From: Adineta vaga | Lineage: Eukaryota > Animalia > Rotifera | NCBI GenBank assembly: GCA_021613535.1 | Contig: CP075497.1 | Coordinates: forward strand, 13,702,001 to 13,766,000 | Direction: 5' to 3' | DNA length: 64,000 nt | The notes under the pieces: generated by a model | Database searches by the model: none | Told to the model about the DNA's origin: nothing | Seen by the model: the letters and a program-made list of their open reading frames with translations, nothing else | Program-made: the position numbers and the translations under genes | Shown here: in pieces, positions 1,934 through 55,685 of the stretch | Layout of the letters: every line of letters begins with the position of its first letter | Position numbering within the stretch: position 1 is the stretch's first letter

Positions 1934-2810
1934 TTATTTTTTAAAAGCATATATGAGAAGAAATCCGTCGGCATCTGCGTGATTATCACGTGGCTTTGCC
2001 ACACCCTTGACATGAATGTCTATAAAATTTGCTTCTTCCATTGCTTCCACGAGCGTTCTGTTCGTTGACTGGGAGAGCAAAAAAACATTTATCGATAACA
2101 GTGTAAAACGATTGATTTCGACCATGTGTCAGCAATATAAAACCGCCGTGTTTAAGAAGAGCATATAATCGCTTAACAGTTGCTTTATATACATCCTGCG
2201 TAAGACAAGCATCTTCCAAACACAATGAGCTCAGTATAATATCGTATTGATCAATGTTAGTCTTTTCATCAAGAATAGGGCAATTGTGAGCGTTTACGTC
2301 ACCACAAATTAAAAGACCACCCTTTTTCAGAGCATCACGCAATCGCTCTTCCCATTTAGATAATTCAGCTGTCCTATCTCCAGACTAGAAAGGTGAATGA
2401 AAAACTTTGCTGATTAAACAACAACAATAACAACAACAGAATTCCAGTATACTTGCCTGCTGTTTATATTCTTGCAAAATAGTTTCAAAAAGCTCACTCC
2501 AATCATGAGCATCTTCTTCACGACTGATCCATTGTTCTACCGCTTTTAAATTACTCGGTGTGTAGTCAGTGAAATGAATCGAATCCACATATTGTGCAAG
2601 TAAAAATGATGAGTACAGCGCTGGACCGCCGCCAAACTCCAGAGCATGTGAATGACCTAAACGCTCTTTGTTCTGAACAAAAATACTTATCATCTCTTTA
2701 AGAAGAATATCGAACGATGGAATCATTTCGAAAAACATGTAGGAACTAAGGTAACCTTCTGTATTGAAATTTGTATGATAATCTTTTGTGTGCAATCGTT
2801 GACTATCCAT
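1934..2810 (-). CDS. NNMT/PNMT/INMT-family SAM-dependent small-molecule N-methyltransferase, 2 exons, 1-nt frameshift near 2056 (pseudogene or sequence error)
   Basis: Motifs DYHTNFNTEGYLSSY, LEFGGGP (motif I), FTDYTPSNL, HDWS, SSLCLEDAC, LLKHGGFILL and SFYTV. Intron 2456-2385 (CAG|GCAAGT...TTCTAG|TCT, phase 0). The spliced length is 805 nt = 268 codons + 1 extra base, which matches the frame switch VNEQ->TLVEAMEEANF. Confidence 0.85.
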
Positions 2811-5535: not shown

Positions 5536-6610
5536 TTAATCATATTGTTGAGAATCCATCTTCTGAAAAATAATTCGACAGTATTCCGCTGTTTCATCAT
5601 TATGATCATTTTTGTCAGATTGAACACAATCCTTGGAATAAGAAAGATTTTGAGTATGAGTTTCACAAAGCATGCTTTTCGTAAAATAACTTTTTTGTTT
5701 AATAATGAATTGATTATTTTTCATCATATTATCTATTGTTAAATATTTATTTTTATTTGATCCACACCAAAGAAAATATCCATTTGGGTGAAGTATACGA
5801 GAAATTTCGTAGGTCAATTCTTTCATTTTTTCTTCTTGAAAAAAGTTTTGATTTAAATCAATCCAAATGATAATATCAATCGATTGATTTTCAAATGGTA
5901 AATGTTGGTTATTTATATCAACAAATTGAAAAGATAATTGTGAAATATCTGAATATAATTTTCGACATAATTCAATAAAATCCAAAGAAAAGCTGATTCC
6001 AACATAAGAATAAGGTTTATAAGTTTTCACACACCAGTCAGCACCAACACCACGATCACAATTGATTTCAATAATATGTTGATTTCGAAGTGACAGATTG
6101 GAAATAACCTTAAAAAAATAAAAATCGATATTCAACTATAAGGGATGCAATAAATAACAGCCATTTTTTCGTTTTGACACGGATTTTTATTATCAAATGG
6201 ATGATTTTCGCATATATTGTATGGTATAAAAAAACAATGTAAAGAGAATGATCTCATTTAAATTTTCAAATAGAATTTTTTTGAAAATTCCATTGAATAT
6301 TTCAGTAACTGTGATTAACTACAAGTCACTGTGCTACTTTTAGTTATCTTAGCCTTGTATATGGTTACAAAATCTCTTCATTTTCTACTTACTTGTTCAT
6401 AGAGTCTTTTCAAATAACTATCATTATTCTCATCATCGAGATCTTCAGAACTAAAATTTAAAGAAAATATTGAATTGTTTAATTTCTTTAATTGAAAACT
6501 TCTTTTATACCGAGTAGACAATTTATTTGTAATCTTTGATTGAATTCTATGATCAATCGTATCATTATTAGCTAATACCGATTGAGTTGATATTGTTGTG
6601 ATAAAAGATT
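5536..6610 (-). CDS. Terminal two exons of the NRPS: linker plus class I SAM-dependent methyltransferase-like domain (degenerate)
   Basis: Spliced sequence EDLDDENNDSYLKRLYEQ|VISNLSLRNQHIIEINCDRGVGADW...YVGISFS...HLPFENQSIDII...EISRILHPNGYF resembles the Methyltransf_11 pattern (LEVGCGxGxG, LPFxDxSFD, RVLxPGG). It has no upstream start of its own and is joined by phase-compatible introns 6759-6611 and 6392-6109. Confidence 0.7.
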
Positions 6611-9600
6611 CTGAAAGAAAACTCTGATTCAACTCATTGGAAATAATAATCATTTTGGAATAATAACTGGGATTATTTTTCAAATGTTATTTTTTAAGGA
6701 ACTTTTGATAAAATATTCACTTTCGTGTTTCGAAATGTACAAATAAAAAAGAAACTTACTTGCAGGAATTCCTTTCCAATGAGTATTCAATGATAATTGA
6801 TCATTTTTCATTATCAATGTTAATGGATATAGACGATTATTACCCATTAATTTCGAACCAGGCATGACTATTGAACCACACATTAAAATACAATTATCAT
6901 TAACAATAACAGGAGATAATTTAAAAATACGTTGTTCAAAAGTATGACACTGAAAATGATTAGGAAAGAAAAGTCATTTTTTATTTGAAAAATTGGAATA
7001 AGAATCTTACAACAATAGCTGAATTCATTTGAAGTCGAACATTATCTCCAATTGTTAGAAAATCATAATCAAAAAGCGAATTTATTTCTGGTATAATAAC
7101 GTTTTTACCAATTCGAGCTCCAAATACTCTAAATAAACGGATCAACCATTGTGTATTACCAAGAAATGAACAAAGAAAATCGAAATGAATACGTGTACAT
7201 TTGTACATAATTTGATTTAATAAAATAAGTTGTCGAATTTTCAGTTTAAATTGATATAAAATCAAGACAATTATTGTATGAAGTATTGATCCAATGATAA
7301 AACCATTTGACGAATAAATTAATAATAAAAAATATTTAGTGATAAAATCAGATAAAAATATCGACCAAAATGGATTATTTTTAATTTGACCTTGTTCTTT
7401 AGATACGATTGGCATTTTAAATGGCATTGCTTGACCTGGTACTCCAATGAAAATATCATTTGAATTTGTTTTTGTATGACGAGAAATTCTTGTTAAATTT
7501 CCCACAATTGAATAAGATTTTAAATGACTACCGGGTAATATTGAACATTTATTACCTAGATTTGTAAAAGAATCGAATTGAATTTTATCAACACGATGTT
7601 CTCCTTGATTTGTTATTTCAGTTGGAATTAATAAAATATAATCAAATGTTGCTAAACCTTCGTATAATTCTAATAAGTTCGCTGGATAAGATAAAAATGG
7701 AATAATTTCACCAATTTGAACATCATTTTCAACATATGCACCTAAGAAACGAAGGATAATTGGATAAAATGGATCAAAACTAGTTGTTAATGACCAACAA
7801 TAACGAAAAGTTGTTACAATCAATTGACGAAACCATAGTTTATTTAAATAAGACCATGATCCAACTGAATAAATTTCACCAACATTACAAACTCCAACAA
7901 AATATTTAAGTAAAATTAATGAAATACAACAACCAAATAAAGACCATAAAAACCAGGAAAAAGCTAAAGAAATAAAGAAGGAGAAAGAAGAACTTAATAT
8001 TGAATGAATTTGATAAACAATCATCAATAATAATAAATGAATAAATATTAATAAAATCAATAAAATGATTTGATAGATATTTTGATAAATTGAAAATATT
8101 CTTTCGTTACTTGTGTTTGAAATATTAACTGAAGAGTTTTCGCCATCGATAATTGTATTTGACAAAATAAAACCAGTCACAGTTGACATTGGTTGAATAA
8201 TAATATTGTTTTCCAAAGAAGCTTTTCGAAATAATATTGATCTTGAACCAATTGAACAATTTGCCCCAATTTTTATTTGAAATAATTCAAATGTATTATT
8301 ATCATTATAATGTAAACAATTAAGAATTGTTTCTTTATCAATCCAAGTCCCACAATCAATCTCTAATAACCATGGTGCATCGATTGTTGTTGTATAAATA
8401 TGAGCATCACGATGAACTTTGGCACCACATGAGCAAAGATAATAATTATACAATGATGTTCCAAGAATATGTTGTAACCAAAAACTATTATTTGTCCATA
8501 AACGATCTAAGAAACACCATTGATAATACTTTAATGAGAAAACCTCATAAATGTGATTTTCTTTCAGTGAAAATAAATTTGAACAAATACAATAAAATAA
8601 AAGATGAATAAATGGTAAGAACGGTAAAAACAACCAATAACAATTCCGAATAATGAATAATATTGGTAATAACCATTGAAAAATTAAAAGTATGATACCA
8701 ATTGATTCGATTAGAAATGATGGGGAAAGATTAACTTTTATTGTATCATCATTCAGAGGCAAAGTAACTATCTTCTGTGATTTGGTAGAATTCAAGAGAG
8801 GTTCAATAACATTTGCTAATTGTCGAACTGAAGGATTATTAAATATAATATTTATATCGATTCTTTCAGAAATTCTTTCGCGAATCAATGTCACCAAATG
8901 AACTGCATGCAAAGATGTTCCACCAAATTCCATGAAAGGTATTCTTATAGATGGAGACTCAACATGAAAAACTTCTTCATAAATCTTTTGTAACTTATGT
9001 TCTAAACTTCCTAATGGAATATCATACTCAACTTCTATCCTAGATGAGACAACTTGGGGTGGTGGAAGACTTTTTCGATCAATTTTGCCGTTCGCATTCA
9101 ATGGAAATCTGTCAAGAATAATGAATATCGACGGAATCATATGTGGTGGAAGATGTGATTGACAATGATCACGAAGTTGTTGTTCATTCACAGATGAACT
9201 TTGGACATATGCAATCAGATAATCATCGTGCCATTTCATCACAACACAAGCTGAGATCGACGAAATGAAGAAAAGACATTGTTCGATTTCACCCAGTTCA
9301 ATACGTTGACCATGCACTTTCACTTGATGATCTTTTCGTCCTCGGTAATGAAGAAGACCATTGCCATCCATATGAACAAGATCTCCTGTTCGATAGAACA
9401 ACTCATCATTTACATAAATCAGTGCTTTTGCACTCAGGTCATCACGATGAAGATAGCCAGCGAAGACACCAGCACCACCAACGAACAATTCACCTTCTTC
9501 ATTCACAATGACTGATTGATGGAATTCATCGAATACCAAACATTGATATTGAGGAAGTGGTGAACCAATGGGAACACTTCTGTAGTCGTTCATCAGATTT

Positions 9601-11755
9601 AAAGAATATGTTGTACAACCGATCGTTGCTTCTGCTGGACCATAAAGATTTAATATACGGATGTCGAACATGTACACTTTTCTTAGGACATTCAGCAACT
9701 TTATGGAAAATGGTTCTCCTACGAAACAAGGATATGATTAGCTGTGCAGAGCAACAGGCGACTTTTTTCTCACTTACCACTGCTGCAAAGTGAACGTAGA
9801 TGGAATGAAACAACTGTATTGTTGCATTGTTTCATGTAATTGAAAAAACTAAATATCAAACTTGGTACCGAATGCATGTAGGTGATTTGTTTTTCTTGCA
9901 AGATTGTCCTTAAGTAATCAAAATCGAGTGTACCATGTGGATGAAGCATGACTAACGTTCCTCCAATCATCAGAATGCCAAGAATTTCTTGAACATGAAT
10001 ATCAAATGAGCACCGCGCCATTTGAACAGCAACATCCACGCTATTAAATGAATCAGTATTGGCTAAAGATTGAATACAATTAGCAAAGTTCTTTTGACGA
10101 ACTTGAACCTAAATACCAAATAATCATACTACCATACTCATAAAAACAAAGAAAAATAACCAACCGCTTTAGGTATTCCAGTTGATCCACTTGTAAAGAT
10201 GATGTAGGCGATGTTCTCTGATGAGATCGTCACATTCGATAGTTTGTGAACACCAATATCATCTTTGCTGGAATAGTCATTCATCAAGATCTCATCAATA
10301 TTCACAGACAGTTCACCACTCTCGATGCCAACAAACTTGTCTGATGTCAGCCAATGAACAAGAACAAGTCGACTGTGTGTTTGTTTAACAAGTGATTGCA
10401 AACGATGCTGAGGATCTCGAGGTGACAACGGACAGTATACACCGCCTACCATTTCGATCGCCATCATACCAATCACCTACAAATCAATCACATCCTTTTT
10501 CTTCGATCCACTCTCCGATATCACAATCACTCACCATTGTCATACTTCTTTCCACACATTGACAAATAATATCACCCACCACAATACACTTCTCTTCAAC
10601 AAAATGTAATGACACCATCTGAACAGAATGCAACAACTCTGCATATGTCAACGATTGTTCATCGAGTTCAACTGCCACTTTCTGTGGATGTGTCATGACT
10701 CGTTCGATGAATGCATGAGGAATACACTGATCACTAAGAGCAAGAGGAGCATCGGAGAATGGTGTCAGTTGTGTGTTGTTCTGTGCTTGCAGAAGAAGTC
10801 GATCATGAGGTAAAGACAGTGATAATTGAGGGATGGATATGTCTAGTAGATGAGTGCCATTGGAAGATGAAAACAGCCGATGTAACATGAGATGGAATCG
10901 TTGAGCTATTGTTTGAATCGTTTCACAAGTGAAGAGGTCAAGAGATGCATTGAGGGTGCAAGAAAAGTGATTTGTCGTTGGATCATGCATGAAACTAGCG
11001 ATGAAATCAAATTTACTCATAATTTCATTTTCAGTAATACGAATTGAGAATGGTATATAGGAGAGTCGACTATCTCCAATCGCTGTTTCATGCTGATCCG
11101 TTGCATCGACGAGAGAAGTGATGAACTCAAATGAGGTGTCGAGGAATGAAGGGTGTGAAAGATGAGGATGTTGATTGAGAATGTGTTGAAGTGGATAATA
11201 GGAGTATTTCAATGAGTTTGTTGCTCTTTCACATACGTGATGGATAAGTTGAGTCAATGACCAATGAACATCTAGTTGACATCGAAGTGGAATGGCATTG
11301 GCGAACATTCCAATGATTGAATTGAGTTCTGGTCGATATCGACCATGGACATTCGTTCCAATGCAAAGATCGTGTTGTCCATTGGTGATTTTGAAGAGGA
11401 AAAGAAAATAGAATGAAAGAATGAGATGTTCAAGCGAGATTTGATTTGTTGATGCATAGATGAGAAGTTGATGGGAGAGATGTGAGTCGAAATCAAAAGT
11501 GAGAGATGTTCCACGACCACTTCGATGTTCATTGGAAAGGCGATGTCGATCGTAGGGCAACGCCAGTGGTTGATGAAGTTGACAATGATGAAGTGTGTCA
11601 AGCCAGAAAAGACGTGCACCGGTCATTGACATTTGCTGTTCGATGACGGCATCTAGGAAGGAGAAATGTGGGGAAAGAAAATGAGCAAAGGAATAGAAGA
11701 GAGTGATATTTACAATCGAGATAACGAAGAGTAGTAGTAGTAGTAGTATCATCAT

Positions 11756-11786
<31 letters not shown>

Positions 11787-14700
11787 AGCATGTGAAGAGA
11801 GTTGACCTGTGACATATGCTTGATTGAGATCGTGTAGAAAGATGTCCATTGATGGAAAGTCAAACATTGCATGATGGAAGTTGAAGATAAGCAGATCTTT
11901 GTCCGACAAGAGACCATCAGATGAGATGTGATTGTGATAAACCAGATGACATCGAAAAACAAGTCCTTGAGCTAGATCAAACAGGTGAGGATTTCTCTTT
12001 TCTTCGAAGAGAATCTGTTGAAGTTGTTGATCGGTGTGATAGGTGCTGTTGCAGAAAGAGAAGTGTGGAGTGGGTGTTTTGAGTTGTTGCATGAGTTGCT
12101 GTGTGTGAGTGTCGAAGATGAGTGCTGTATGAAGGGATGGGTGTTTGTTGATGATGAGTTGGAGTGCAAGCGAAAGTTTGCTGGTTGAGAGAGAATGTTG
12201 AGGATGTAGACGATAGATGAATGGCATGTTGTAGATCGCCACTTGTGGATTGTCAGGATCGAAACGTACTTTTTCATCAAGCCAAATCCGTGCTTGCGCA
12301 TATGATGCTGGTGCTATAAGTTAGAAACTTGTGATCAACGGTAACTGATACGAAAGCGGATGGAGCTTATTTGAAAATTTGTTTATTGTTGGTCGGAGAT
12401 AAAGTGCAAGGGTTTGCGGTAGAGGAAAAGCGTATGTTTCAGACGGTTTAACGTAATTATGAAATTGGGAGAAGATGAGATGGAATGAATAGGACGCTCT
12501 GGATGCGGATAAGTTGGTATAAGAATTAAAAATCGCGAAAAATAATTATTGACTACTATTTTTTGAGAGTTTTTTGGGAACGACGAAGATAGAGTGTTAA
12601 AAAGTTGCAAATGATAAAAAGCGACGGGGAATTTTGAAAAATGATTAGAGCCAAGTGAAGTAGACTTGAGATCATAATCAAAAGGTTAAATTTTAATAAA
12701 AATGAGGCATTGGTTTCGATCAGTCTGTTTGTTCTTTCATGACTATGTTCAATTTGGATAGCTATGCAGAGTTTTTACCAAGTTGTGGATGTAGTTGTTT
12801 TGTCGGATTTTGATGTTTCATAGAGAGGTAGATGACAATATGCACGAACAACATTTATCGGGATCAATTCATTTGACACTCGACTGAATTAGTAATCTTT
12901 AGATGTCAAGATGAAAAATTGCTTGTTGTTTTCTAGGCATTCAGTCCCTGTAATAGCCACTAAGGTCAAACAATACGGACCGTGGTGTTAGTCCTGGGTA
13001 AGATCACCAAACTGTTCATAACACTTCCATATATACAGAGGAGGGTAGAGAACAGTTTGGTGGCTCCAAGGGGAGTGAAGGACAGAAGGTGACTGAGATT
13101 TAACTTAACTTCGATTAGGTTTTGTAGCGGGTAACTCCGCTAGTAGAAGATAGAATAATATTGAAGCGTGTCTTTCATAGAAAAACAAGAAACCTGTGTC
13201 CAAAAATCTTTCTTCAAGAATTATCTACACTTGTTTTCAGTCTAACGAAAACGAATTCGAAGAGCTTTGACTATAGTTCTTATTTATCGAGTGCTCCACG
13301 ATCGAAATCGCTGTCTGAATGGAATGCTAGACTACAAAGAACAGCTGTCGTCATATTTTCATGCTTACACATGTCTGTTTTTTCTCGACACAAGAATGAA
13401 TACCATGGAGTACACATAAGAGTATCTCCGAAACTGAACTTAAACCTGGTGGGCCTTTTACCTTTCAGTGCTATATGAAGAAACATACAAACGAACACGC
13501 AAATCACGTTTCTCATAAAACTCTCTTGTCAGTCGAGAGAATAAGTAAGAATAACTTTAATATCGATTATCGTTCAGCAGTGAGACTGTTTTTTCACATG
13601 CGTTTTTCGTTTATTTTCTGTTATACGTACTCTTTTTGATTTTTCTATGTATTACCGATCTTAAGTAAAAATTATACTAGAAAACAGCATACAGTAAAAG
13701 TAGGATTCTAAAAAACTCTACGCCATTCATTAGCATTTTATCAGATTCTAGAACTTCAGGAACTCGTTCTTTTCTCTCTGATATTAGTTCTAAAGAAAAT
13801 ATAGTAATGGATTCAGAGAGAAAAGATTTGTGGATACTAACTAATGAACCAGAGATGCGTAAATACAAATACAAACTGTACTGGACTTGATGTATATATT
13901 ATTTGTAAATGTGTACTCAGAAATCTATCCTATAGCTATTATTCATGTACTGTCATGCACTGATCCCACTTTGGATCTAAATCGTAGAATCGGTTGACTT
14001 GTACGCTCATGTATTGTTTCTACTTTACATCTGAAATCTAAAAATAGTTACCTTGTTCTAAAATGTTCAGTTAAAAATCAGGCCTGAATCAAAAAAAATC
14101 TATAAATATTGGTTCTCGTCTTCTGTTAAATATGGTGATCTACTTCGATGCTCCATCGTTCCATAAACTCAATCTGACATGAAATTCAAAATTCATAATT
14201 AACATTCTAACTAGAAATCGTTAGCGTGTATTGTAAAAAAACACCCAACTATCCTAGCGACTATCAAGAATTATCAAAATGTTTATTACATATCATCTTG
14301 CTCGATCCTGGTCGAGATGCTGTTCATCAGGTCTTCAAAGTATTTTTATTTTTTGCCATCTTGTTCGACTTGGACACAAACGCATCTATCAGTCAGTCTT
14401 TTCTCATCATATACCTAAGCTAGAGCCAGTACATGAGAATACATAAGATTACCTGGACGTACAAGCTAAACGATTCTAAGATATATACTCAAAGTATGGT
14501 CAGTACATAAGAAAATAGGCGAGTGCAGAGTGAACGAATCTGATATGGTTAAGTAAAAATAGTGTTGCACTATGTAGTATTTCTGGTATAAGAGTGACAC
14601 GTAAAGTACAGTGAAAGTTGTCCTCATATTTGCGCAGCCCTCTAATAAACTGACACTAGGACAATATAGCAGTCGACATTTATTATACGAACTGATTATT

Positions 14701-17700
14701 TATCGGACACTGCCTATACGGGAGTGGTAAAAGTAAGCATAGCTCTAAACGCAACCACATTTTTGTCTCTATATTTCTCATCTATATGAACCACGAGGAA
14801 TACCGATCAAGGCACGATAGTTGTAAATGATGATGCACGGAGAAATACAATAGTATCGTTTGCCGGTGCTGTATGCTAAGAAACTCACTGGAAAAAACCA
14901 AAAATATACGGTTTGGAATGCGGCAAATAAAGATATATACACAATCTTTATTTGTCGATCTGAACACAATTGCATAGACAAATCCTACGACTCTTAACTA
15001 CTGTATTTCATACTGATATTCCTCCTGCATTTAGCATTTGCATCATTTTCCTATGACCTCAATAGCTCTTCCACATGTACACTGTAAAAATATTGGTGTT
15101 TTACCGAGCTCATTAGGTTTCCTATACTTCCACCAATCGATTTTGATTTTAGTGAGATCGAGAAGGTTCGGCAGTGTTCAAAAAGTTCAGAATATTTTGA
15201 ATTGAACCACACATGGTTCGGTATGATCACTGAAGGTTTAGTGCAGTTTATTCGGAACGAATAATAAGTTGACAAATCCTTAAAAGCTTGACGAAATTTG
15301 TGCGAAACTCGTCGAGGTTTCGTATGTCAATTGGAGGTTCAGTCAATTCGATACCGATCGGCTTGCACTCTCGTAAAATTTGCACGAATCTTTAAAGGCT
15401 TCCAAAGTTCATAAAAATTTTAGCAACTTTATTACTAAAGTTGTGGTGGTTCTGTATATTATTTACTGGACCGTTGACAGCCCAATTACGTGTCTGAAGG
15501 TTCAACAACCTTCATGCGAAACCTTTTATCATCCGACTATTCATATGAAGGTTCTATTTATCTTCATATAACGAGTTTTGGTTTCGTACACTTCAACGTA
15601 GTTCGAAATAGCCTTTACGGAACCATCGATGGTTTCGTATTGTGGCTTAGGGTTCGGCGGATTTCATGCGAAACGACCGAAGAGTCTCGTTAATTCACTC
15701 ATGGTTTAGAAGAATTTATTCGAAACTGTCATGGGATTCGAACAGCGAGTAAAGGTTTGGTTCAGTTTTTCCGAAATTAACTATGGTTTCATATACTCAC
15801 CCATGGTCTAGCGAAACTATCAACGGTTTCTTCTCATCGCGCAAGGATTGGTACAGTTTCAGTCGAACTGTCTCTGCCTTTGGATATTGGTCGAAGATTT
15901 AAGAGAATTTAGGCTAAACTATCATGAGTTCTGTACGCTTACAAGTGGTTCAGTATAACTTTTTCGAAACGACTATCAACCTCGCAGAATGAGTGGAGGG
16001 TAGGCAAAACTTTTACTAAACCATTGACATCTGACACTAGTCCAGTTAACAAATGAGGAGGGCTCAGTGAAATATATGACTATTCATATGAGCGGATGTC
16101 CGCCATTCAATAGTCTGGCGAGCAGTTAGGTAAGTGATGGTTTGTCATAAATTACATCTTTTCTTCTTGACTGTTTAGAATCAATGTCAATAGGTTTTTG
16201 GATTGGTCAACGTCTACCCATGCCCTTAACAGTATTTGTCAGATTTGCAGGCGCCTTCGAAAAAAATCTTTGAAGAATGAATTATAAAGTGGCTGAATAC
16301 GGAGCCTCTAATATAATCATCAGAAAAGAGTATTCCACCAGACGAAAAGAAAGATCAATGCAGTGAAGGTTTCGCAGCTACAGGGTAGCACGAAACCTTT
16401 TTTGAGATAGATTCAGCGGGTTTTGTACGGCACCACTGGTGCGGAACCTTTGCTACGGAATCTCTGTTCTGAATTTTTCTGCTAAGGTTCTATCCGAAGC
16501 CTTCATTCGATCAAAACGAAAAACGATTTTTCCGTGTATCTGAGGGAAAATTCTTTTCTTTTTACAGTGTATATATTCCTTTTTTTTTCTTTAGTTGATT
16601 ACTTCTACTGATCCAAATTATTACCTTCGTTTATCACCTCACATTGTCGACTAAATAAAACATCATCAACTTCCCTTCTTTCTTCTGGTAAAACAATCTC
16701 AAATGCTGATATTGGAATCTCATATCCATTCTGCACCATCACTATGTCTTCTTCCGAAGAAAACACTTGTTCGAAGACATACTGAAATCGCACACCTATC
16801 TCTCGAACTGTGCTCTCATTAAATAAGTCAGAGACTGCAGTCAATGCACACGAAAGTTGACCATCTTTCGATGTTGTTGGATCATAGATGAAACGGAGTG
16901 AAAAGTCAAATTTAGCCACTTCAAATGAGTCATCTAGTGAGACATTCACCAGTCGTGCTTCGTCCAGGTTCAGTTCATTGACAGCAGATGAATCAGTGAG
17001 AAGAAAATCAAGCATTGTTTCAACAAGTGAAATATTAGAGTGATTGACATGACGAAGATCAGCGAGAAGATGCTGAAGTGGATAATGAGAATGCGGAAAA
17101 ATTGATAGACATTTGCATCGAACTTGTTGAGCAAGTTCATGAAATGACCAATGTGGATCAAGTTGAAGACGACAAGGTAATGTCGACACAAACATACCAA
17201 TCATCTGCTGTAATTCGGACCTATACCGATTCGCATTGATCGTAGCAATATACAGATCTGTTTCAAGATGAGATAATCGAAAAAGAAATAGATAGAATGT
17301 CGCTAAGGCAAGTTGAAAGAGTGTAAGATGATGATTGGATGCATAGTTGACAAATGCTGAACATGATTGCTGATCAAATGTAAGTGAAACAAACGATGCT
17401 GAGCCAGATCGTTGATTAATAGTTGATGATGCACGCTGTCTATCAGCAACTAAAAGCAGAGGATGAACTTGATGAAAAGTCAATCCATGTAGTTGTGAAC
17501 ACCAGAATCTCTGAGATAGAGTCATGTCGATGAGATGCTCATGAACTGAATAATCAATATATTGAAATGTTTCATCATCACCATCATCATTCAAGGTCAA
17601 AGAAGAAGTGTTGCTTTTTGAATAAGCGAGCGATAGATCACGAATGAAGATTGATGTTGAAGTGCCATCAAAGAATGCATGATGAATAGTGAACAAGATG

Positions 17701-21206: not shown

Positions 21207-21247
<41 letters not shown>

Positions 21248-36200: not shown

Positions 36201-36431
36201 TCGATGTTCATTGGAAAGGCGATGTCGATCGTAGGGCAACGCCAGTGGTTGATGAAGTTGACAATGATGAAGTGTGTCAAGCCAGAAAAGACGTGCACCG
36301 GTCATTGACATTTGCTGTTCGATGACGGCATCTAGGAAGGAGAAATGTGGGGAAAGAAAATGAGCAAAGGAATAGAAGAGAGTGATATTTACAATCGAGA
36401 TAACGAAGAGTAGTAGTAGTAGTAGTATCAT

Positions 36432-36472
<41 letters not shown>

Positions 36473-39400: not shown

Positions 39401-42400
39401 TTTTTTAACTTCAACAGTACAACTAAGTTTCAGTTATATTTGTACCATTAATATCTATGACTTGTCGCCAACGTTCTGGTAAAGACAGGATCCCTCGTTC
39501 GTAGAAGTCCTTTGATTTTTGAACAGAGAAGTCGGCGATATCCATTTTCAGGTCGTTCTCGTCGTCGAATTTTTTCTCACGCAAATGATGAGAAAGAGAA
39601 CGAAACAAATGGTAGTCGGTTGGAGCAATGTCAGGAGAATAAAGTGGATGAGGAAAGGTAATCCATTCGAGATCCATTAATTTTTCACACGTCGATTTAG
39701 CAACATGGGGTCTGGCATTATCATGTAAATAATAAATTCGATCCTGGTTTCCCTTGAGTTTTTTGGCAACCCGGTCCAATTGTTGACAGTAGAGATCAAC
39801 CGTGATTGTACGATCATTTGGAAGAACTTCCCAATGAATAACTCTATTGACACCCCACCAAACGCTCAGCATCACCTTTTTGGGGTGTAGATCAGCCTTA
39901 GGCGTTGCTACATCTGTTTGACCAGGACTTAGCCACTGGCGTCTGTGCGTATGGTTAACATACTACACCCACTTCTCATCACCAGTGATAAGATTGCATA
40001 GCCATTGATAGTTGCGGTAAGATGTCATTAAATCCATACAAGCATCGACCCGGCATTGAAGCTGACGTGCTGATAATTCGTGGGGTATCCAAACTCCATA
40101 TTTCAATGTCTTGCCTAATTCTTTCAAATGTTTTTCCACAGCAGTATGAGAGCACCCAAGCTGCTCTGTTAAACACCGTGAAGTCAATCGAGGATCTTGT
40201 TCGATAAGCTGATTTAAAAGATTCACATCCACTTCCATTGGTCTACCAGATCGAGGTAAATCGTCGAGTTCTAAGTTACCATTCATGAACCGATTGAACC
40301 AATGTTGTGCCGTACGAATAGAGAGTACATCCTTGCCGATCGTGCTGCATACGTTGTTGGCTGCTTCCATTGCTTTATGACCCAGGCGAAATTCATGAAG
40401 TAAAAGCACTCGAATCTCTCTACGAGAAAGATTCATTTTCAGTTCGAGATCAGTGTCCATATCGATGACTTTATTATTATTCGAGAGATAGTCGCACTCC
40501 CTTTATATATCTCTAGTATGGAAACTTCTAGAACTTTCTTGAATGTTTTAGAAAATTTTCAAAAAAACGCAAGAACTTTGTTGCCAACCGAACAGTATCT
40601 CAATGATATCCTATTTCGGAATTCTTCTATCCCGTTTTAAATATAAACAGATGGTAATCCTGCTTTCCACTCTAAGATTATTGGATGACTTTCCTCCTGT
40701 ACTTTCTGACTAAAATGAATCAGAATCATTACCTTCGTTGATCACATTCGATTGACGATTAAACACCGCATCGTTGATTTCATTTCTTTCCTCTGGTAGA
40801 ATAATCTCATATGTCGATATTCGAACATCAGATTCATTCTGCATCTTTGTTCTCTCTTCGGCACCAAACAACTGTTCAAATACATATTGAAATCGTACAC
40901 TCATTTCTCTAACTGTTCTCTCATCAAATAGATCAGATGACGCAATGAATGCACACGATAACTCAACATTGTTCGATGTTGTTGTTGAGTTATAAAGGAA
41001 ATGCAGTGAGAAATCAAACTTAGCCACTTGATCTGATCGTTCCAATGACACTTCTTCCAGTCGTGCTTCGTCCAAACGCAGTTCGTTGTGATCAGATGAA
41101 ACAGTGATAAAATCAAACATTGTCTCAACAAGTGAAACATTCGACTGATTGAGATGATGAAGATCAACAAGCAGATGCTGAAGTGGATAATGAGAATGTG
41201 GCAGAATCGATAGACATTTCTGCTGAACATAGTGAACAAGTTCATCGAAGGAACAGCGAGGATCAAGTTGCAGACGATGAGGTAGCGTCGAAACAAACAT
41301 ACCAATCAAATGTTGTAGTTCAGATCGATATCGATTTGCATTGATTGTTGCAACACACAGATCTGTTTCAAAAGGAGACAATCGAAATAGAAAAAGGTAG
41401 AATGTAGCTAAAGCAAGCTGAAAGAGTGTGAGATGATGTTTGGATGCATAGTTGACAAATGCTGTGCATAGTTGTGGATCAAATTTCATCGACATACATG
41501 CTGCTGAGCCAGATCGCTCACTTATGCTTGATGATGAACGTTGTCGATCGACAGATAACAACAGAGGATGATGATGATGAAAAGTGAAATCTTGCAATTG
41601 CGATAACCAGAACTGTTGAGATGCAGTCAAATCGATGAGACGTTCGTGAACTGAATAATCAATGTATTGAAATGCTTCATTATCATCACTGAGAGGTGGT
41701 GGAGAAGAACTGATTGTTGAATAAGCAAGAGAGAGATCACGAATGAACGGTGATGTCGAGGCGCCATCAAAGAATGCATGATGAACAGTGAACAAAACCA
41801 GATCGCCATTGCTAAAAGTGCTAGTTGATGGACGAGAACGAAGAACATGACAGTTAATCACATGTCCATTCGACAAATCAAACAGATTCAGTTGATTGAT
41901 GATTTTCTTAACAGTTTCGCTTGTTGAACAATCATTATCTTTTAGATCAATGATAGAAAATGTAGATGGTTTGATATTGGAACAATCTTGTAGAAGAACT
42001 CCGTGAATATCGAGATAAAGTGCAGTTCGAAGAATATGATGTTTTGCAATGACACGTTGAAATGCTTGTTGAAGTCGTGAGAATGATGCGTGATGCTGAT
42101 GATTGAGCGATGCGAAACGATACAACAGAGGAACAACATACATATTGTGATTGTTTGTTGGTGATGAAAAACGGATGTGATCATCCAAGAAGATGCGTTC
42201 TTGTGCAAAGGATGCTCGAGCTAGAAGAAAAGCGAACATGTGTTGATAGACTATGTGAGAGGCTCGTGTGTGTCTTACCTTGTGTCAGATGAAGTGAAAA
42301 CCAAGTGGAATCATCTGTTGTGTGTGACATGTCGAGATTCTGTTGAATGACCTGAGCATGATGAAAAATAGTTGGGTTTTGAAAAAGATCGGTGATAGAA

Positions 42401-46774: not shown

Positions 46775-47037
46775 TTTGTAAACGTGAACGAATCGAATAG
46801 AATGGAAATGAAACTGATTACAATCTAGAAATTAAAGAAAACTAAAAGGCAGATTATTTGAATGGAATGATAATGATTAATCTGTTCTACAGTTCATTGT
46901 TAAGTGGTATAGAAATGAATTAGAAGAAGTTTATTTGAAATATTCAATCAATGAAATCAATAATCGTACAAATATTTATGAATCAAGTTGAGCATAACAA
47001 GACAAAAGTTTGATTATTTTCATTTGATAATTCCAAA

Positions 47038-50000
47038 CTAATGAACATATTCAATGCTATTAATCATTGAACAATGACGTAATTCTTCAATAATTGCACG
47101 TGCAATTAGTTCCTCTTGCGGATGATGACTTGTTACAAATCGATAAGTTCCTCTTGGTTGAATTCGACGAATTTGTAAAATGATTTCTTGAATAGAAGTT
47201 GAACTGATTTGAATTGAGAATGTTAGAGGTATTTGTATCATATAAATAGCAATTGATTCAAGATCATTATGTTTTGTTGATAATCTATTCATTAATAAAT
47301 CGGTAGAATGGAATTGTTTTGTAATATAAAAATAAATTAAACTATTACAATCGATTGGATGTTGGAGACAAAGAATATCTTCGATTCCTGTATACTTTGA
47401 ATTATCGAACGACTGCGTTTGATTCTCTTCATTGAAATCATTCTTATTTTTGATATTTTCTTCTTTTATTATAGATGAAACAGTTTCTTGTTGTTGTTCA
47501 TGAAGTTTATTAAGAATTGTATTCGCAATAGTTTCTATAGAGAATCCTTGGAGAAGATGAATCAACGGAATATAAACTCCAGTTTCATGTCCTAACCAAT
47601 TGTATAATGAAAGTGCAGCTAAGGAATCCATGCCTTGACTAATTAACGATTGATCAATTAAGATTCGATTGATATTCGATGCGCCTAAGATTTTAGCAGC
47701 ATTGATTTGTATTTGTTCAATCATTGTTTCTCTATTATTGAAATTCGATTGCTTAGGAATGTTCTCGGTTGATTCATTGGTGAAATTCATTGATCTATAT
47801 TGTTCTTTAACTAAGTTTTGCAAAGCAAATGTTGATAACTGATCCAGTCGATCATATAAAATTTCCCAATTGACAGGAAAAATAATTGGACATGGACAGT
47901 GATTTTGATTGGTACAAAATTGTTCAATTAATTCAAACACAATATCTGGTGGAAGGAATTCCAAACCTTGTGTAGTTTGTAAAGTTTTTAATGAATCTTT
48001 TTGCCGATGAAACATTCCAGCGCCATTGATAGCTGGTAAACTAATTGAAAGTGCAGGTAGATTTAGTTGTTGAACACGATAAGTAGCAAGACAATCAAGA
48101 AATTGATTGCCAGCATTATAACCTGCTGAACCAATTTCTAGAAGGTGATTACGAATTGATGAGAAAAGTATAAAGAAATGCAGAGAACAATGGGTCATTT
48201 GGGTGATTTGATGAAGATTCCAAGCACCATGAATTTTAGCTGAAAAGATATTTGACAAATGTTCTGGAGTTATATTCATTAATAAACGATCATCAGCCAT
48301 TCCAGCACTATGAATAATACCACGCACAGGATTTGGTGTTTGATTGATTTTGTCAATAAGATTATAAACTTGATCAAAATTTGCGACATCAACTTGAACA
48401 ACATCAACATCAGCTTGATATTGATCGCTTACTTGTTTTAATTTTACCCAATCATCATATTGTGGATTGGAAATCTGTTCCAAGTCATTTAATGTTCGAC
48501 GACTCATCAATACTAGACGTTTCACATTTCGTTTTTCAATCATCCAACGAGACATTCGTAATCCAACACCACCGAATCCACCTGAGATAATAATTGTTCC
48601 TTTTTCAAAAACATTTTCCGGAAACATGATCTTTGCATCTAAAAGAAATATAAGGAGAAAGACTTCAATATTCTATAACAATATCTTTTAGGAATTTAAA
48701 CGTAGAGATACGCATCTGTTATTATTTATTGGCGTCTCAGTTACTTATCTGTTAATAAAGATCACTTTTTCCTCCTAAATATCTGTTATTGTTTCAAAAT
48801 AGAGGAAGAAACATTTAAATATCCGAGTGAGAAAAAAAGAACATATTTGAAACGACAAGAGATAAAATGATGGATGAATATCTTTGAAAGCAAATCATGA
48901 TCTTACCTTCTAAGAGATTCTTAGTTGATAAATTGGTTAAGTATAATGGTTGATCAGAATTCGCTAATCGAACCACCGTTTTCCCCATTGTTTGATGATT
49001 ATTACATCGAGTAAATGCATCTACTACTTCAGATGGTTCATAAACAACAATCGGTTCAATGGCTTTGAATTTTCTATCCAGAATTAAATTCATCATATCA
49101 TTTAACATAGTTTGACAAAGATTTTGTTGATTTTCCCAAAGTAAATTTAAATCAATGACATGAAAACTACAATCACATCTGAAATCAAACATTGAGACAT
49201 GAGTTTTCTTGAAAATATCACGTTTTCCCCATTCAATAAAATGACCATGTGACGAAAGTAATTTCACTGATTCTTGAAGAAGATTTCCTGATAAACAATT
49301 AATAATCACATCAACACCATTTGGGAAAAGTCTTTTCACATGATTAATAAATGAATTGTCTCGACTGTTGAAAACATGTTCAATTCCATAATATTCACGA
49401 AGAAATTGACGTTTTTGTTCTGTTCCAGCTGTTGTGAGAATACGTGCACCAATATATTGACAATATTGTATTGCAATTTGTCCAGCACCACCCGTTGCTG
49501 CATGAATAAGAACTGTTTGATTCGATTGTAAATGAACACGATATTTGAGAGAATAAAGAACCGTTAGAGAAACCACAGGCATTACTGATAATTGAATATC
49601 TGAAAGTGGACATTGTTTGGGAATCAATATAAGTTGCGATGCATGAACAACAAGATGTGAATGAAAAACACCATGAATAGATATTCCTAGAACATGATCG
49701 CCAATTTCGTAGTTCTGAACATTAGAAGATTTCCGAACAATAGTTCCAACAAAATCCGAACCGGGTTCATCGTTTGGATTGACTAACGGTTGTTCATTAG
49801 CTGATTGTCCTGCAGGAGATGTATATGGATAAAGAGCACGTACTTTGAGAACATCACGAAAATTAATTCCAACATAATCAATACGAATTTCTATTAGATT
49901 TTCCGCTAAATCTTTCTTTATTCGTTTTTCTCTAGTCCATGTTAAATCAGCGAGAAAAGTCGATGATGGAACATGAAGACGAAATGGTTGATGATCAGAA

Positions 50001-53000
50001 TCTTGTTTTGGAATAATTGAAACAGGTTTTGTTTCTTCTTTCTTCTCTTTTTCTTCTCCTAACATTTCATATTCATAGGTCAAATATTTCATTTGATCTT
50101 GATTTTCATCAAAAGAAAGAATGATTTCATCCATTGTATTTCGATAGTAGCAATCAGAAATGAATTGGAAAAGAGATTGGATCACTCTCGTTGATAATGA
50201 TGTTTGAATATCAATCAATTTCAACCGATGTTGTTTATATTCACTAAATAAACTTCGTACAAGACCAACTAATGATGAGCCTAACAGATTAGAAGTGGAA
50301 GAAATATTCCATTGGGATTGACGTGTTATTACAAATAGAAATGGATGAGAATTCGATGAAATATTCTGAATGATTTGAAGAATTTGAATAAATGTTCCAC
50401 AAATCACTTCTTCATACGATTTCATTGATGAAAGAAATTGTGAATCATCTTCGAGATCAATCTGTTCATATGGCCAAGCATAGATGATATTCAATTGGTG
50501 ATATTTTTTCATCATCATTTGAATGGTTGAGCGAATAAATGGAATTTTACATTTAGAAATATCAAAATATCGAACATTCAATGTCGATGGTAATAATGAA
50601 GAGAAAATCGAACCAAAACTATTTTCGGAATCATTTTTTGAGAAAATTAACCAAGCTGATTGATTTTGTTCGTCACGAAAAGATTGGACTTTTTTCAAAA
50701 GAATTAGTGAGTTTTCACATGAGTTGGATACTGTATGAAGAAGTTCGAAACCATTGATTTCATTCAACGTATTGATGAATTGATCAATATGAGAAAGACG
50801 ATGAACATAGTTTGATGATAAATTATTCAATTGATTATAAAAATCAAATAAAAATTGTAAATAAAATGGAATATTAAAAAATTCTGAGAATATAAGAAAA
50901 CCATTGGGACGAAGTAAAGAACGAAAATCAATTAAAATTTTGTTTAAATGTTCATCTTTTTGTAATTGATTGGAAATAAACATCAGATCAAATGATTCGG
51001 AGTGAAAATTCTGACGATTAAATGTTGAATCAAAATGAATTGTTAAATATGGATTGGCATTTTTCTCAAAGATTTGTTTTATTTCATTCAATTGTTTGAC
51101 ATTTTCATTGATATAAGAGAAATCTATGGAGAAATGAAATTCATCAGAGAAATGAGATAAATATTCCAATAATGATAGAATATTTGATGAATTATTCGTA
51201 TCGAAATAAAAGATTTGGAAATGAAAATCATCTGGTTTGATTGGAAAATGTTGTAAAATTGAAGAGAAGATTTGTTCAATTGAATTCTGATGGAGAATCT
51301 TTTGTATTTCTTCAAATAATTTCTCAGTTGTATTCGTTTCTTCAAGAGATTGTTTGTTTAAATTGAAACCAGCTATATTTAATAAATGAAGAATGGACTT
51401 GAACTTTGGATATTCTTTATAAAGAGTTTTGAAGTAAAGATTTGTGGAATAAATTGTTATTTCTACTTCTTCTGATGAATATTTATCAAATAAATCTTTA
51501 TATTTTTCATCAATCAATTTGGAAAATAGTCTCAAATAATAATAAACTAGTTTATTCAATTTCTCTTTTGAATTGATGAAATCTTCGTTAATATTTGAGA
51601 TGAATTCAAAGATGAATGAGGAACTCTCATCAAATAAACTTCGTTTGAAGAAGATTTCCACCCATTTTTGTTTTATTGAATAATTTTTTAATAAAATATT
51701 GAGAAAATTTCCACGATAGATATCCGACAGATTCATTGAGGAATTGAATTGTTTAAAGATTGTATTTTCTTTCTTGTTGGATTGAATATCGTGAATGGGT
51801 TGTAAAACAACACCTTGAAGTTGAAATCTTGAGAGATTTTCATTGGAAGAAATGGAACAATCAAATGTTAATGTTTCTTCATGATTTAAACCGAAAATCG
51901 AATCACGTTGTTTTCCATAAACAGAAAGTTCCTTGGTTTCCAATTGATTTGTTTTGAAAATGAATTTTTCGATGGAAATCGGAAGAAATGTTTGAGTATT
52001 TCCAGGAATTAAAGTTAACAATGGTTGTAAACAACAATCGAAGAAAGTTGGATGAAGAATATAATCCGATGAATTCAATTCAGATGAAATTTCACATAAA
52101 ACTTTCGATTTAGTACCTTTTAATGATTTCATCTTTTGAAATGAGGGTCCATAATGATAACCACGTGTTGATAAATAATTATAAACATTTTTCATATCAT
52201 TTGTTGACCATGTAAACAATTCTTCATTTATGTCAAAGAGATTTTGTTCATTTTGATCGTTCTGATAATCTCCACAAACATGAAGAGTAAATTCATTGAA
52301 ATTTTCTAATTTTTCAAACGAATGGAGAAAATCTTGACACGACATTCCTGATGAATGCATGAGATGTGAACCAGAGGATGACCAGGGTCGACTATAGATA
52401 AAAAATTGACGTGTTGGAACGACGATCTGTGTAAAGATTTCAATTAATTGATCTTTGGAAAGAATCAAGGGTTTGAATATTTTAATCTTTTCTATAATAA
52501 TCGTTAAATCTTCATTATGAAATAAAGATGATTGATAATAAGCAACCAGAGCTAATTCAATAAATGCTACGATTGGAAAGAGAATTGTGTTTTGAATTTG
52601 ATGATCAATTAAATAAGAATATTTCGAAAGATTGAGATTAATCAAAGATTTCCAGGTGATATTTGTTTGGTCAATTAACTGACGAATACCAAGTAAGGGA
52701 TGAATGGGATGGAGATTATGATTGAATAGACGTTTCAATATCGAATCGTTGGATTCGTACCAACATGAAGTCAGATCAAATGAATAGAATGGAAAACGAT
52801 CAAAGAAATGTTCATGAATTTCTATTGATTGGATTTCACGAGTGAAGAAATAGTTTGAAAAATCTTCAGAGCAAGTGATTAATTCACTTAAAGTTGTTAA
52901 TAAGGTCATTTGTTCATCTTCTTTTCGTTTTAGTGTGGACAGTATGGCAGGTTTTTGCTCATTATTATTCATCAAGTCATAACATTGACGAATTGAGGTG

Positions 53001-55685
53001 GAAAGAACTGGATGTGGAGAGATTTCTAAATAAACATTTGCTGAATTATCACGTATTATTGCTGAAATAGCATCGGAAAATCGAACACATTCTCTGACAT
53101 TCGACCACCAATATTGCGAATTAAGTGGAATAGTCTCACTCAATTCATCACCAATCACACTGGAATAAAAACGAGCTTTGGAACATTGACGATTAAACAT
53201 TTGTTTGGAATCATTGAGAGGTAATCCTGGAATATCTTTCAAAAATGAAATCATATCATTTTGAATATTAAAACGTTCCATTTGATCAGAATGAAATGCA
53301 TTTTCAATACGAAGAAATGTTTTAAATACATTTGGATAAAATACTGAAAGAATTTCATTAATTTCCTTCAGAATATTTTCATCGCCACTCAATGTTAACG
53401 AACGTGGACTATTAACCACAGCAATTGAAACACGATCTTCAATACCTTTCAGTATTTTTTCTTCAATTTCTTCTTTACTCATGGCAATGGCTAACATTTT
53501 CCCACCTTTCCTTGTATTTCGATTTTGAAGAGTGGATCGATAATAAACAATCCGAATCGCTTCTTCTAATGTCACACGACCAGATACAAAAGCAGCTGCT
53601 TGTTCACCAGCACTATGTGCAACAATACATGATGGATAAATATTCCACGAATTGAATAAAGCAGTTAAAGCAACTTGAATTGCAAACAGACTTGGTTGCG
53701 CAATATTTGTATCATTGATTCGCGAGTCATTTTCATTTGCTTTCCAAATCAGTTCTTCGATCAGACAATATTCATTATTATTCACTTTTTTCAATTCTTC
53801 ATTAATCAATTCAATCCAATAACGAAATAATGGTTCACTTTCATATAATTGTCGGCCCATTGCCCACCATTGTGGACCTTGTCCACTATAAACAAAACAT
53901 ATTTTAGATGATGATGTTGATGGACGTGTTGTTATGCAAAGTCCTGGTGCTGTTTGTCCATGAAGAAATGATTGAATTTGTTCTTCAAGTTGTTTCAGAT
54001 TCGCAAATACAAAAATTGCTAAATGTTTGTAACTAATTGTTCGTTGAAGAAGAAGTTGTTTTGATATTCGTTGCAGAAATCCATTGGGATTTTCTTCGTT
54101 GATTTTCAGTAAACTGTTTTCTAACCATTGGTGAAATTGAACAATTTGATTACGAAGAGATTTGTTATTTTTCGCTTAAAAGAAAATAATTTTAATAATG
54201 AATAGATGAATTGAGATTTTGAAAACTTACTTGAAAAAACAAAAAGAAAAGATTGCTTAGTTTTAATAAGATTATTTTCATCAGACATTGTCTGTGTAGA
54301 AGAACGTGGTTGATATTCTTCGACAATTGCATGAACATTATTTCCACCAATACCAAAGGAGTTAATTCCAATCGCTATTGGATTTTTATGATCGTACGAA
54401 GGAAATAAAACAGCAGTTTGAAGAACATGAAGATTATATTTTTGTGCTTCTATTTTTGGATTCAATGAAGTAAAATGCATATTTGGTGGGATCATTCGAT
54501 AACGCATACACATGGCAATTTTAATCAGTCCAGCAACACCAGCAGCACCTTCTGTATGTCCTAAATTACTTTTAATTGAACCAATTAATAATGGTGGATC
54601 GGACTTCGATCGATGGAAAAATTCTCCTAAACAATTTGCTTCGATTGGATCACCAACAATTGTTCCTGTTCCATGCGCTTCAATATAAAATATTTGTTGT
54701 AAATCAAAATTAGTTCTCGAGTATATTTCTGTTAATAAACGTTTTTGTCCAATGGGTGATGGAACATTGAGATTGATTTTATTTTCATTTCCATCATGAT
54801 TGCTAAGAACATCATGAATAATACAATAAATTCTATCACCATCACGTTCAGCATCATTTAATCGCTTTAATAACAAAAGACCAAGACCATCAGCTAAACA
54901 AGATTTCAATGTGATTATTTCAAAATTTCTTTACTTTTACCTTTGGCATAACCATTTGCATCTGCACTAAATGATCGACTTCGTCCATCCGGTGATTGTG
55001 CACCAATAATTGACCCATAATAGAAATTCTCTGGTGCAAACAAACCATTCACACCACCACATACAGCCATATCAGCTTCATTTGTTCGAAGAGTTTGCAC
55101 CGCTAAATGTAAAGCTTCTAATGATGATGAACAAGCAGCATCGAATGAAATATTTGGAGCCTGTAAATTAAAATGATAAGAAAGGCGTGCTGATGCATTG
55201 TATAGTAAACTATTAGGACCATGATATCTTGTCCGATATTCTGGTTTCATATTAAATGAATTAATGGAATGATCTGTTGAAAATTGTCCAATATGTACGG
55301 AAGTTTTTGAACCATTCATTTTTTCCATTGCATAACCAGCATCTTCAATTAAATGAATAAATTTCATCATCAGTAATCGATGACATGGATCAATACTGCT
55401 TGCTTCACCATCAGAAAGATCAAAGAAACTTGCATCAAATGTATCCCATTGTTGATTGGATAGGAAATATCCACGACGAAGAAGTTTCTGTTCAAGTTCA
55501 TTATTATTATCTTCATTTAACATATGTGTACAATACGATTGAAGATTAAAACGATCTTCAGGTATTGAACTACCAACATCTCGACTGTCTTTTAATACAT
55601 TCCATAAATCTTCTGCTGAGTGAATATCACCTGCAAATTCACAAGCAATACCTATTAATGCTATTGGTTCATGATCTATGTTCAT
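47038..55685 (-). CDS. Reducing type I polyketide synthase (KS-AT-DH-pseudoMT-ER-KR-ACP-vestigial TE), 4 exons, about 2758 aa
   Basis: KS: EPIALIG, DAACSSS, EAHGTGT, KSNLGHTE, NSFGIGG. AT: GQGPQW, AHSAGE, NAFHS. DH: HPLLG, DHQIQNTILFP, HPTFFD. ER: HAATGGAG. KR: SGGFGGVG, HSAGMADD, YNAGN. ACP: GMDSL. Introns 54940-54894, 54230-54175 and 48906-48639; the exon sum is 8277 nt = 2759 codons, in frame. Confidence 0.93.

Follow-up and report, generated by a model that had tools for sequence, protein, structure and literature searches.

The stretch of DNA analyzed here, a window of 64,000 nucleotides from chromosome 6 of the bdelloid rotifer Adineta vaga, carries on its minus strand a polyketide synthase (PKS) gene followed by a nonribosomal peptide synthetase (NRPS) gene. 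With a probability of roughly 0.6, we read the pair as a horizontally derived, intron-bearing PKS-then-NRPS cluster that belongs to a paralogous bdelloid family and in which the PKS and a single NRPS gene would form an assembly line for an acyl-pentapeptide. The locus is Cluster 6.7 of A. vaga and is already catalogued (Nowell et al. 2024, Nat Commun 15:5787), since its open reading frame (ORF) coordinates, once 13,702,000 is added, equal published rows for Av20 Chrom_6 (CP075497.1) with the same strand and domain list; for example, 13746045-13748774 corresponds to window positions 44045-46774 and 13756915-13757685 to 54915-55685. Supplementary Data 9 of that study lists region6.7:13707536..13757685, on the minus strand, as intact, with an aa_length_est of 11508, NRPS_term and AdoMet as further domains, in_3_domain_set YES, and Av13_model_hits 3 (PMC11258130). 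The annotation of the cluster comprises PKS_KS/AT/KR, Condensation, PCP, NRPS_term, and AdoMet (PMC11258130). The published entry is a table row only, assumes that the PKS and the NRPS are cotranslated, and calls the cluster intact, whereas here the two appear to occupy separate reading frames, an insertion of 2 bp lies in the fourth NRPS module, and the arrangement of introns and modules is resolved.

An earlier note on this window, made from its letters alone, had described three co-oriented, intron-containing genes on the minus strand (the PKS, the NRPS, and an NNMT-like methyltransferase gene), and all three are present. Its placement of the DNA in an animal-type genome also stands, given GT-AG spliceosomal introns, a mariner element, a LINE-type reverse transcriptase/endonuclease fragment, and DDE_3 transposase fragments. 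The novelty that it claimed for the locus does not survive: besides the entry for Cluster 6.7, rotifer NRPS-PKS clusters were surveyed by Suring et al. 2023, whose independent tally in A. vaga is 69 NRPS and 5 NRPS-PKS clusters (PMC10531068). Nor is the architecture unique, as Cluster 6.6 and at least five other loci follow the same plan. The earlier note does not mention a methyltransferase domain within the NRPS (5536-6135), the doubling of condensation domains where modules join, or the reading-frame defects at 20315-20316 (module 4) and near 2048 (NNMT-like gene). The locus is a real and correctly described cluster but not a discovery, and the anatomy added here is incremental.

Cluster 6.7 lies about 130-190 kb from the chromosome end; the approximately 40 horizontally acquired biosynthetic clusters of A. 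vaga are enriched in subtelomeres (PMC11258130). Its neighbor, Cluster 6.6 (chromosome 6 13590957-13688100), is a diverged paralogue on the opposite strand, and the two lines converge tail to tail on an interval of roughly 20 kb that holds the NNMT-like gene. All sequence searches reported below were run on single open frames or exons.

The PKS gene and its junction with the NRPS gene

The PKS is a highly reducing type I enzyme, in which the KS, AT, DH, ER, KR, and ACP domains are all found with their catalytic motifs (DAACSS, EAHGTG, NLGHTE, AHSAGE, GGFGGVG, and GMDSL are intact). The domains follow the order KS-AT-DH-degenerate CMeT-ER-KR-ACP-truncated thioesterase (TE). Pfam places the N-terminal part of the KS at 54915-55685 (E 4e-52) and its C-terminal part at 54121-54909, the AT, DH, and ER within 48815-53860, and the KR and ACP within 47038-48627; a weak methyltransferase remnant lies between the DH and the ER. 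The NCBI model I4U23_031556 (2758 aa, 100% identical) is a stand-alone PKS, and tiling of this model gives four exons, at about 55685-54936, 54893-54215, 54176-48880, and 48645-47038. Outside A. vaga, the best PKS match within Adineta reaches 49% identity and so is no nearer than the in-genome paralogue; beyond rotifers, the closest relatives are type I PKSs of bacteria, at 26-33% identity.

Judged by its sequence, the TE of this PKS is vestigial, as the earlier note had proposed. The 149 residues that follow the ACP gave no Pfam match (including PF00975) and no match in the PDB with single-sequence phmmer. However, seven paralogous PKS genes in the genome share the same tail, and a profile of the seven tails matches the NRPS TE 7crn (E 8e-5) and the animal FAS TE (E 2e-4), stopping in both cases at the nucleophile elbow, after which the PKS frame ends. 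What is left is the N-terminal third of a TE, with GxSxG replaced (as in all seven paralogues) and the Asp/His part missing. Five related rotifer PKSs, in contrast, retain a full PF00975 domain. A Foldseek search with a model of the tail had no hit at E <= 0.001, and its weaker hits mixed alpha/beta hydrolases (the FAS TE among them) with unrelated alpha/beta folds, a result only weakly consistent with a thioesterase. The conservation of a truncated tail suggests that it is kept for a structural or docking role. Prediction of a complex between the ACP with its truncated TE and C0, the first condensation (C) domain of the NRPS, returned no verdict, neither for nor against binding.

The PKS stops at 47038, and the ATG at 46774 opens a full C domain (Pfam, E 1e-76), which confirms the spacer of 263 bp (46775-47037) ahead of a C-led NRPS that the earlier note had described. 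Cluster 6.6 conserves both the stop after the tail and the ATG at the equivalent C0 start, the gap there being 2.5 kb, although the two clusters are only 75% identical in the KS, 41% in the tail, 49% in C0, and 32% in the terminal domain. That a stop and a start persist in sequences so far apart favors two polypeptides, one for the PKS and one for the NRPS. From these features, the two appear as separate reading frames and not as a single hybrid polypeptide.

NRPS modules, introns, and membrane terminus

The NRPS spans 46774-5536 on the minus strand (Table 1). Pfam finds five A and five T domains, in agreement with the five modules of the earlier note, and the A-T units are spaced 8.9, 7.9, 7.3, and 9.5 kb apart. 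The first domain, C0 (46774-45287), has the motif HHIAGDL, an HHxxxD, and is the leading C domain that the earlier note had described. It is followed in module 1 by a remnant that consists of a C-terminal C lobe only (45217-44462) and, after A and T, by a second C domain, C2 (42199-40733, HHAFFDG). In modules 2 to 4, a C domain with the motif HHAMFDF and a short intron inside it is followed by A, T, and C2, and module 5 comprises C, A, and T. Two complete C-type domains thus stand at each of the module junctions, an arrangement conserved in Adineta steineri. In module 1, and likewise in the Cluster 6.6 counterpart, a C domain seems to be joined directly to a C lobe. Assignment of C2 as an epimerization domain was rejected, given its C1-type SFAQERIFL start, its HHAxxDG motif, and PDB matches to C domains only.

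The four gaps between the modules contain no domain remnants. A few codons ahead of a stop, each of the C2 exons that precede them ends at a donor of the form ...G|GTAAT, GTAAG, or GTATG, and the C exons that follow begin right after an acceptor of the form CTAAC (branch-point-like)...TATAG, with no possible start codon; all four junctions are in phase 1. The order C2 then C also holds in A. steineri, where a single annotated gene contains the equivalent gaps, which measure just 330 and 660 nt. Because donors and acceptors match in phase 1, start codons are absent, and the A. steineri gaps lie within one gene, we take the NRPS to be, most probably, a single gene; subtracting the PKS from the published length estimate leaves about 8,750 codons for it. 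We conclude that the inter-module introns were probably swollen by transposon insertions. Inter-module intron 1 holds a mariner element of 1243 bp (39350-40592) with HTH_48, a partial Transposase_1, and inverted ends of roughly 40 bp; a copy 97% identical lies on chromosome 1 at 816769-818011, and at least 20 copies are near 83%. Frames chain through modules 1, 2, 3, and 5 with short introns only. This chaining was done by script and shows only that open frames can be chained, the splice sites being heuristic except at the directly read junctions. The NCBI model I4U23_031552 was rejected as a guide, as it skips conserved domains and is plainly chimeric.

The short introns between T and C2 and between the N and C lobes of the C domains are also in phase 1. 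Since all bounding introns share this phase, C2 exons, N-lobe exons, and whole modules would be frame-neutral cassettes. The modules are also mosaics. Among modules 2, 4, and 5, identity is 100% (introns as well) for the greater part of C and the beginning of A. For the remainder of A it is 100% between modules 1 and 2, the A domain of module 2 being identical to that of module 1; module 3 is about 45-65% identical to the other modules. Within a patch at 34868-34300 (module 2 coordinates), identity among modules 2, 4, and 5 is 61-93%, and this patch holds the A4-A5 pocket. When pocket positions are placed by PheA numbering, modules 1 and 2 presumably have one code, modules 4 and 5 have codes that differ from each other at two positions, and module 3 has a code of its own. 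The identity pattern fits gene conversion that would have spared the specificity region. Low-complexity poly-Ala/poly-Asp/poly-Thr runs lie between HHxxxD and the next C motif (36400-36330, 21170-21100, and 11710-11640); they occupy the N-lobe exons of modules 2, 4, and 5, vary slightly in length, and are not found in module 3.

At its end, the NRPS has a Pls/PosA-type architecture, with six helices in three pairs and three beta-helix segments, C-terminal to A-T. Six hydrophobic segments in three pairs separate hexapeptide-repeat (left-handed beta-helix) segments, and TIGR02353 matches at E 2e-26, with 92.4 bits from the one exon scored, below the curated cut-off of 423.1. Among 1.84 billion representatives, 254 relatives of this terminus were found at E <= 0.001. 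Most of the distant ones are single-module proteins of approximately 1300 aa, and a few are multi-module, including examples from Mastigamoeba (an amoebozoan) and a metagenome. The terminus is followed by a linker and a methyltransferase (MT) domain, the domain proper lying at 5536-6135 and being kin to mycobacterial lipid/fatty-acid O-methyltransferases (NCBIfam, E 1e-19). Dozens of homologous A. steineri models have this MT fused to A-T and the terminal domain. The homologous NRPS ends in A. steineri have numerous near-copies, and one is preceded by a flavin monooxygenase gene.

Table 1. Features of Cluster 6.7 and of the adjoining methyltransferase gene, in window positions
Feature	Position	Strand	Basis
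Highly reducing type I PKS gene	47038..55685	minus	Pfam, active-site motifs, exon tiling; NCBI model I4U23_031556
Vestigial thioesterase, 149-aa PKS tail	47041..47487	minus	7-paralogue profile
Spacer from PKS stop to NRPS ATG, 263 bp	46775..47037	minus	ORF positions
NRPS module 1: C0, half-C remnant, A, T, C2	40733..46774	minus	Pfam, motifs
Predicted inter-module intron 1, 3737 nt, phase 1	36996..40732	minus	Donor/acceptor sequence; holds mariner
NRPS module 2: C (two exons), A, T, C2	31892..36995	minus	Pfam, motifs
Predicted inter-module intron 2, 2857 nt, phase 1	29035..31891	minus	Donor/acceptor sequence
NRPS module 3: C-A-T-C2, divergent	23958..29034	minus	Pfam, module comparison
Predicted inter-module intron 3, 2187 nt, phase 1	21771..23957	minus	Donor/acceptor sequence
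NRPS module 4: C-A-T-C2, 2-bp insertion	16625..21770	minus	Pfam, module comparison
Predicted inter-module intron 4, 4311 nt, phase 1	12314..16624	minus	Donor/acceptor sequence; dispersed-repeat fragments
NRPS module 5: C-A-T	8709..12313	minus	Pfam
Pls/PosA-type terminal membrane domain	6695..8708	minus	TIGR02353, Hexapep, hydropathy
Linker and C-terminal class I methyltransferase domain of NRPS	5536..6683	minus	Pfam, NCBIfam
NNMT/PNMT/TEMT-like methyltransferase gene, 2 exons	1934..2810	minus	Pfam, paralogue alignment

Proposed assembly route and rival readings

In the route that we favor, the single-module reducing PKS would build a reduced acyl chain on its own ACP, which it would be unable to release itself since it has no working TE. 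The N-terminal C0 of the NRPS would then move the chain onto the first amino acid, and five modules would extend it, modules 1 and 2 with the same pocket, 4 and 5 with similar pockets, and 3 with a distinct one. The membrane-embedded terminal domain would finally release an acyl-pentapeptide at the membrane, either as an amide to a free amine, by analogy with Pls/PosA, or by hydrolysis. In PosA and in epsilon-poly-lysine synthetase, the terminal domain couples the carrier-bound residue to a free amine (PMC10522769). The NRPS modules, parted by long phase-1 introns, would have been homogenized by gene conversion outside the substrate pocket. The earlier note had predicted a lipo-pentapeptide-like product released at a membrane. 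The C-led five-module NRPS and its membrane-type terminus are there, and together with the vestigial TE they make release of an acyl-pentapeptide at the membrane a reasonable expectation, although the release step itself goes further than these features do.

Several observations weigh against this reading. A simple assembly line does not explain the doubled C domains. The nearest solved relatives of C0 are ordinary C domains (4zxh and 5u89), and C0 is not notably similar to any solved starter C domain; 8f7f and 8f7h, surfactin C-domain entries that we take to be starter C domains, match C2 but not C0. The A-domain codes, placed by the same PheA numbering, match no familiar code. In the MT domain, motif I reads CDRGVG, against CGRGAG in almost all of 24 homologues, and an upstream NWGY-type motif seen in the same comparison is also lost; with near-invariant motifs altered, the MT domain may be inactive. 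Furthermore, module 4 departs from modules 2 and 5, with which it is otherwise 100% identical here, by a TC insertion of 2 bp (20315-20316) that leads to a TAG at 20307-20309. If the insertion is real, the enzyme would end after module 3, and splicing around it would delete conserved sequence. This insertion and that in the NNMT-like gene described below may be real or assembly errors.

No transcript evidence turned up in the sequencing runs covered. Same-species runs that we guess to be RNA contain almost none of the cluster's words, and the runs that do contain them look like DNA. In read assemblies over 43600-49599, identical contigs were of read length only, at a depth of 2-6, and came from two runs of uncertain type; one such contig crosses an exon-intron edge unspliced and is therefore probably DNA. 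Other runs gave, for this interval, pieces less than 90% alike, which are paralogues, no usable joints were obtained, and no read contig crossed the 263-bp spacer in any run assembled. Among A. vaga NRP/PKS (nonribosomal peptide/PKS) models, only g48151 and g23567 were induced by Rotiferophthora (PMC11258130). The latter is an intronless, GC-elevated gene, unlike Cluster 6.7 (PMC11258130), and the KS N terminus of g48151 differs from those of both Cluster 6.7 and Cluster 6.6.

The cluster might accordingly be a decaying or dead copy, so that this haplotype makes no product, a reading that we hold to be unlikely but that deserves more weight than any other rival. The module-4 insertion with its TAG (20315-20307), the +1 insertion in the NNMT-like gene, the lost MT motifs, the mariner and repeat fragments in the introns, the near-absence of cluster words from the presumed RNA runs, and the lack of a close PKS orthologue in other Adineta species (best 49%) would all suit decay. 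However, the remaining exons are open over more than 30 kb, and catalytic motifs are preserved in the KS and the ACP, in every C domain, and in the cores of the A domains. Moreover, the blocks of 100% identity imply recent gene conversion, which also repairs copies, and Nowell et al., who call the cluster intact, caution that what look like frameshifts in other clusters, which are expressed, may stem from problems with the assembly (PMC11258130). It is less likely still that the PKS and the NRPS are adjacent but independent, with offloading of the PKS by a trans-acting activity and another acyl donor, or none, for the NRPS. Such independence could accommodate the separate reading frames, a docking prediction that favors neither side, and a C0 unlike solved starter C domains. 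Yet a PKS with a truncated TE followed by a C0-led NRPS recurs at no fewer than seven loci and in the convergent paralogue, and the TE has been lost in exactly this PKS subfamily while its relatives keep it.

Two further readings concern the introns, and we consider both very improbable. The module blocks could be separate C-A-T-C genes with promoters in the gaps of 2-4 kb, their products assembling in trans as in split bacterial NRPSs. The automated NCBI annotation does yield several models, one of which (I4U23_031552) starts in the 4.3-kb gap, and the gaps far exceed the other inferred introns (40-240 nt); but that model is the chimeric one, none of the blocks has a start codon in the stretch from the upstream stop to the C1 motif, consensus donors and acceptors are phase-matched at every junction, and the A. 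steineri gaps of 330-660 nt lie inside one gene model. Alternatively, the phase-1 cassettes might be used for alternative splicing (C or module skipping) and for intron-mediated shuffling with pocket-sparing conversion, in which case one locus would give several lipopeptides. Last, contamination by a fungal, protist, or bacterial contig has next to no credibility. The nearest non-rotifer PKS relatives are bacterial, and an amoebozoan likewise has multi-module NRPSs with such a terminus, but the locus sits inside a chromosome-scale contig of 13.9 Mb with rotifer transposable elements in introns and flanks, it has spliceosomal introns and paralogues on four chromosomes, and 2013 DNA runs labeled as the same species contain 98-100% of the sampled words.

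Neighboring genes and known systems

The NNMT-like gene falls outside the published region 6.7. NNMT_PNMT_TEMT matches at 2385-2873 (E 3e-16) and 1986-2342 (E 5e-11), covering model positions 2-117 and 141-223, but no full-length open frame runs across the Pfam model. Compared with a chromosome-6 paralogue, a G inserted near 2048 (+1) throws the final 44 or so codons into another frame, and since this frame is still similar to the paralogue, the change is recent or an assembly error. The genome holds three NNMT-like genes, namely, the one in the window, one in region 6.5, and one beside cadherin genes on chromosome 1. That two of the three adjoin biosynthetic genes is suggestive of cluster membership, but these two share the same subtelomere and so are not independent. 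In addition, no NNMT-like gene was found downstream of the homologous NRPS end in two A. steineri loci. Of the third gene postulated by the earlier note, co-orientation and position (2810-1934) therefore stand, while its membership of the cluster is weakened by the A. steineri loci and the frameshift.

In region 6.5 (chromosome 6 13226001-13236000), one frame encodes the C-terminal part of a cytochrome P450 and a cyclodipeptide synthase; this fusion is followed by an arginase-family gene and, 3 kb downstream, by the co-oriented NNMT-like gene (offsets 619-2106, 2333-3489, and 5063-5928). Between Clusters 6.6 and 6.7 and beyond the PKS, no transporter, P450, or phosphopantetheinyl transferase was found, only an NHL-repeat fragment and ORFs without Pfam matches. 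The flank at 56300-64000 holds transposon remains only: a LINE-type reverse transcriptase and endonuclease at 56696-58836 and DDE_3 at 60471-62225 and 63064-63945.

Bdelloid rotifers are the main animals known to carry dozens of microbial-type assembly-line clusters, proposed to serve as chemical defense in a lineage without observed sex. Cluster 6.7 adds no new kind of system, as it was already in the published inventory. Its anatomy does provide testable details for a product-orphan family (a lost PKS release domain, doubled C domains, phase-1 cassettes, and pocket-sparing conversion), shows a terminus of the poly-lysine-synthetase type on a multi-module line, and draws attention to two possible reading-frame defects where the published list has an intact cluster.

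Within the genome, at least seven paralogous PKS-then-NRPS loci are found. Cluster 6.6 resembles Cluster 6.7 in its reducing PKS with a short tail, its C-led NRPS, the pairing of C0 with a half-C, and its Pls-type terminus, but it has neither the MT domain nor the NNMT gene. The fungus-induced g48151, with a predicted cyclic heptadepsipeptide as its product, shares the family plan but is a different paralogue; induction was reported for it and not for Cluster 6.6 or 6.7. Pls/PosA enzymes consist of an A-T unit and a domain of approximately 700 residues, which is made up of three pairs of membrane helices and three beta-helix segments and which frees the product by linking it as an amide to a free amine. 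They are single-module (about 1300 aa) and iterative and make a homopolymer, whereas in Cluster 6.7 the corresponding domain ends a five-module line and is followed by a methyltransferase; its identity to presumed bacterial members is 21-27%.

In bacterial lipopeptide synthetases, a starter C domain heads the NRPS, much as C0 would here accept a carrier-bound acyl chain. Fungal PKS-NRPS hybrids share the reducing order KS-AT-DH-(CMeT)-ER-KR-ACP, but, unlike Cluster 6.7, they are single polypeptides. Cluster 6.7 differs from both in having two C domains per junction and in a release that would not involve a TE, R, or terminal C domain. Rotifer sequences show no significant hits to NRPS or PKS genes of other metazoans, and most bdelloid C domains form their own clade (PMC11258130). 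Caenorhabditis elegans PKS-1 and NRPS-1, which make the nemamides, likewise form a hybrid polyketide-peptide pathway encoded by an animal. In the nematode, the genes are unlinked, whereas the PKS and NRPS genes of the rotifer are clustered.

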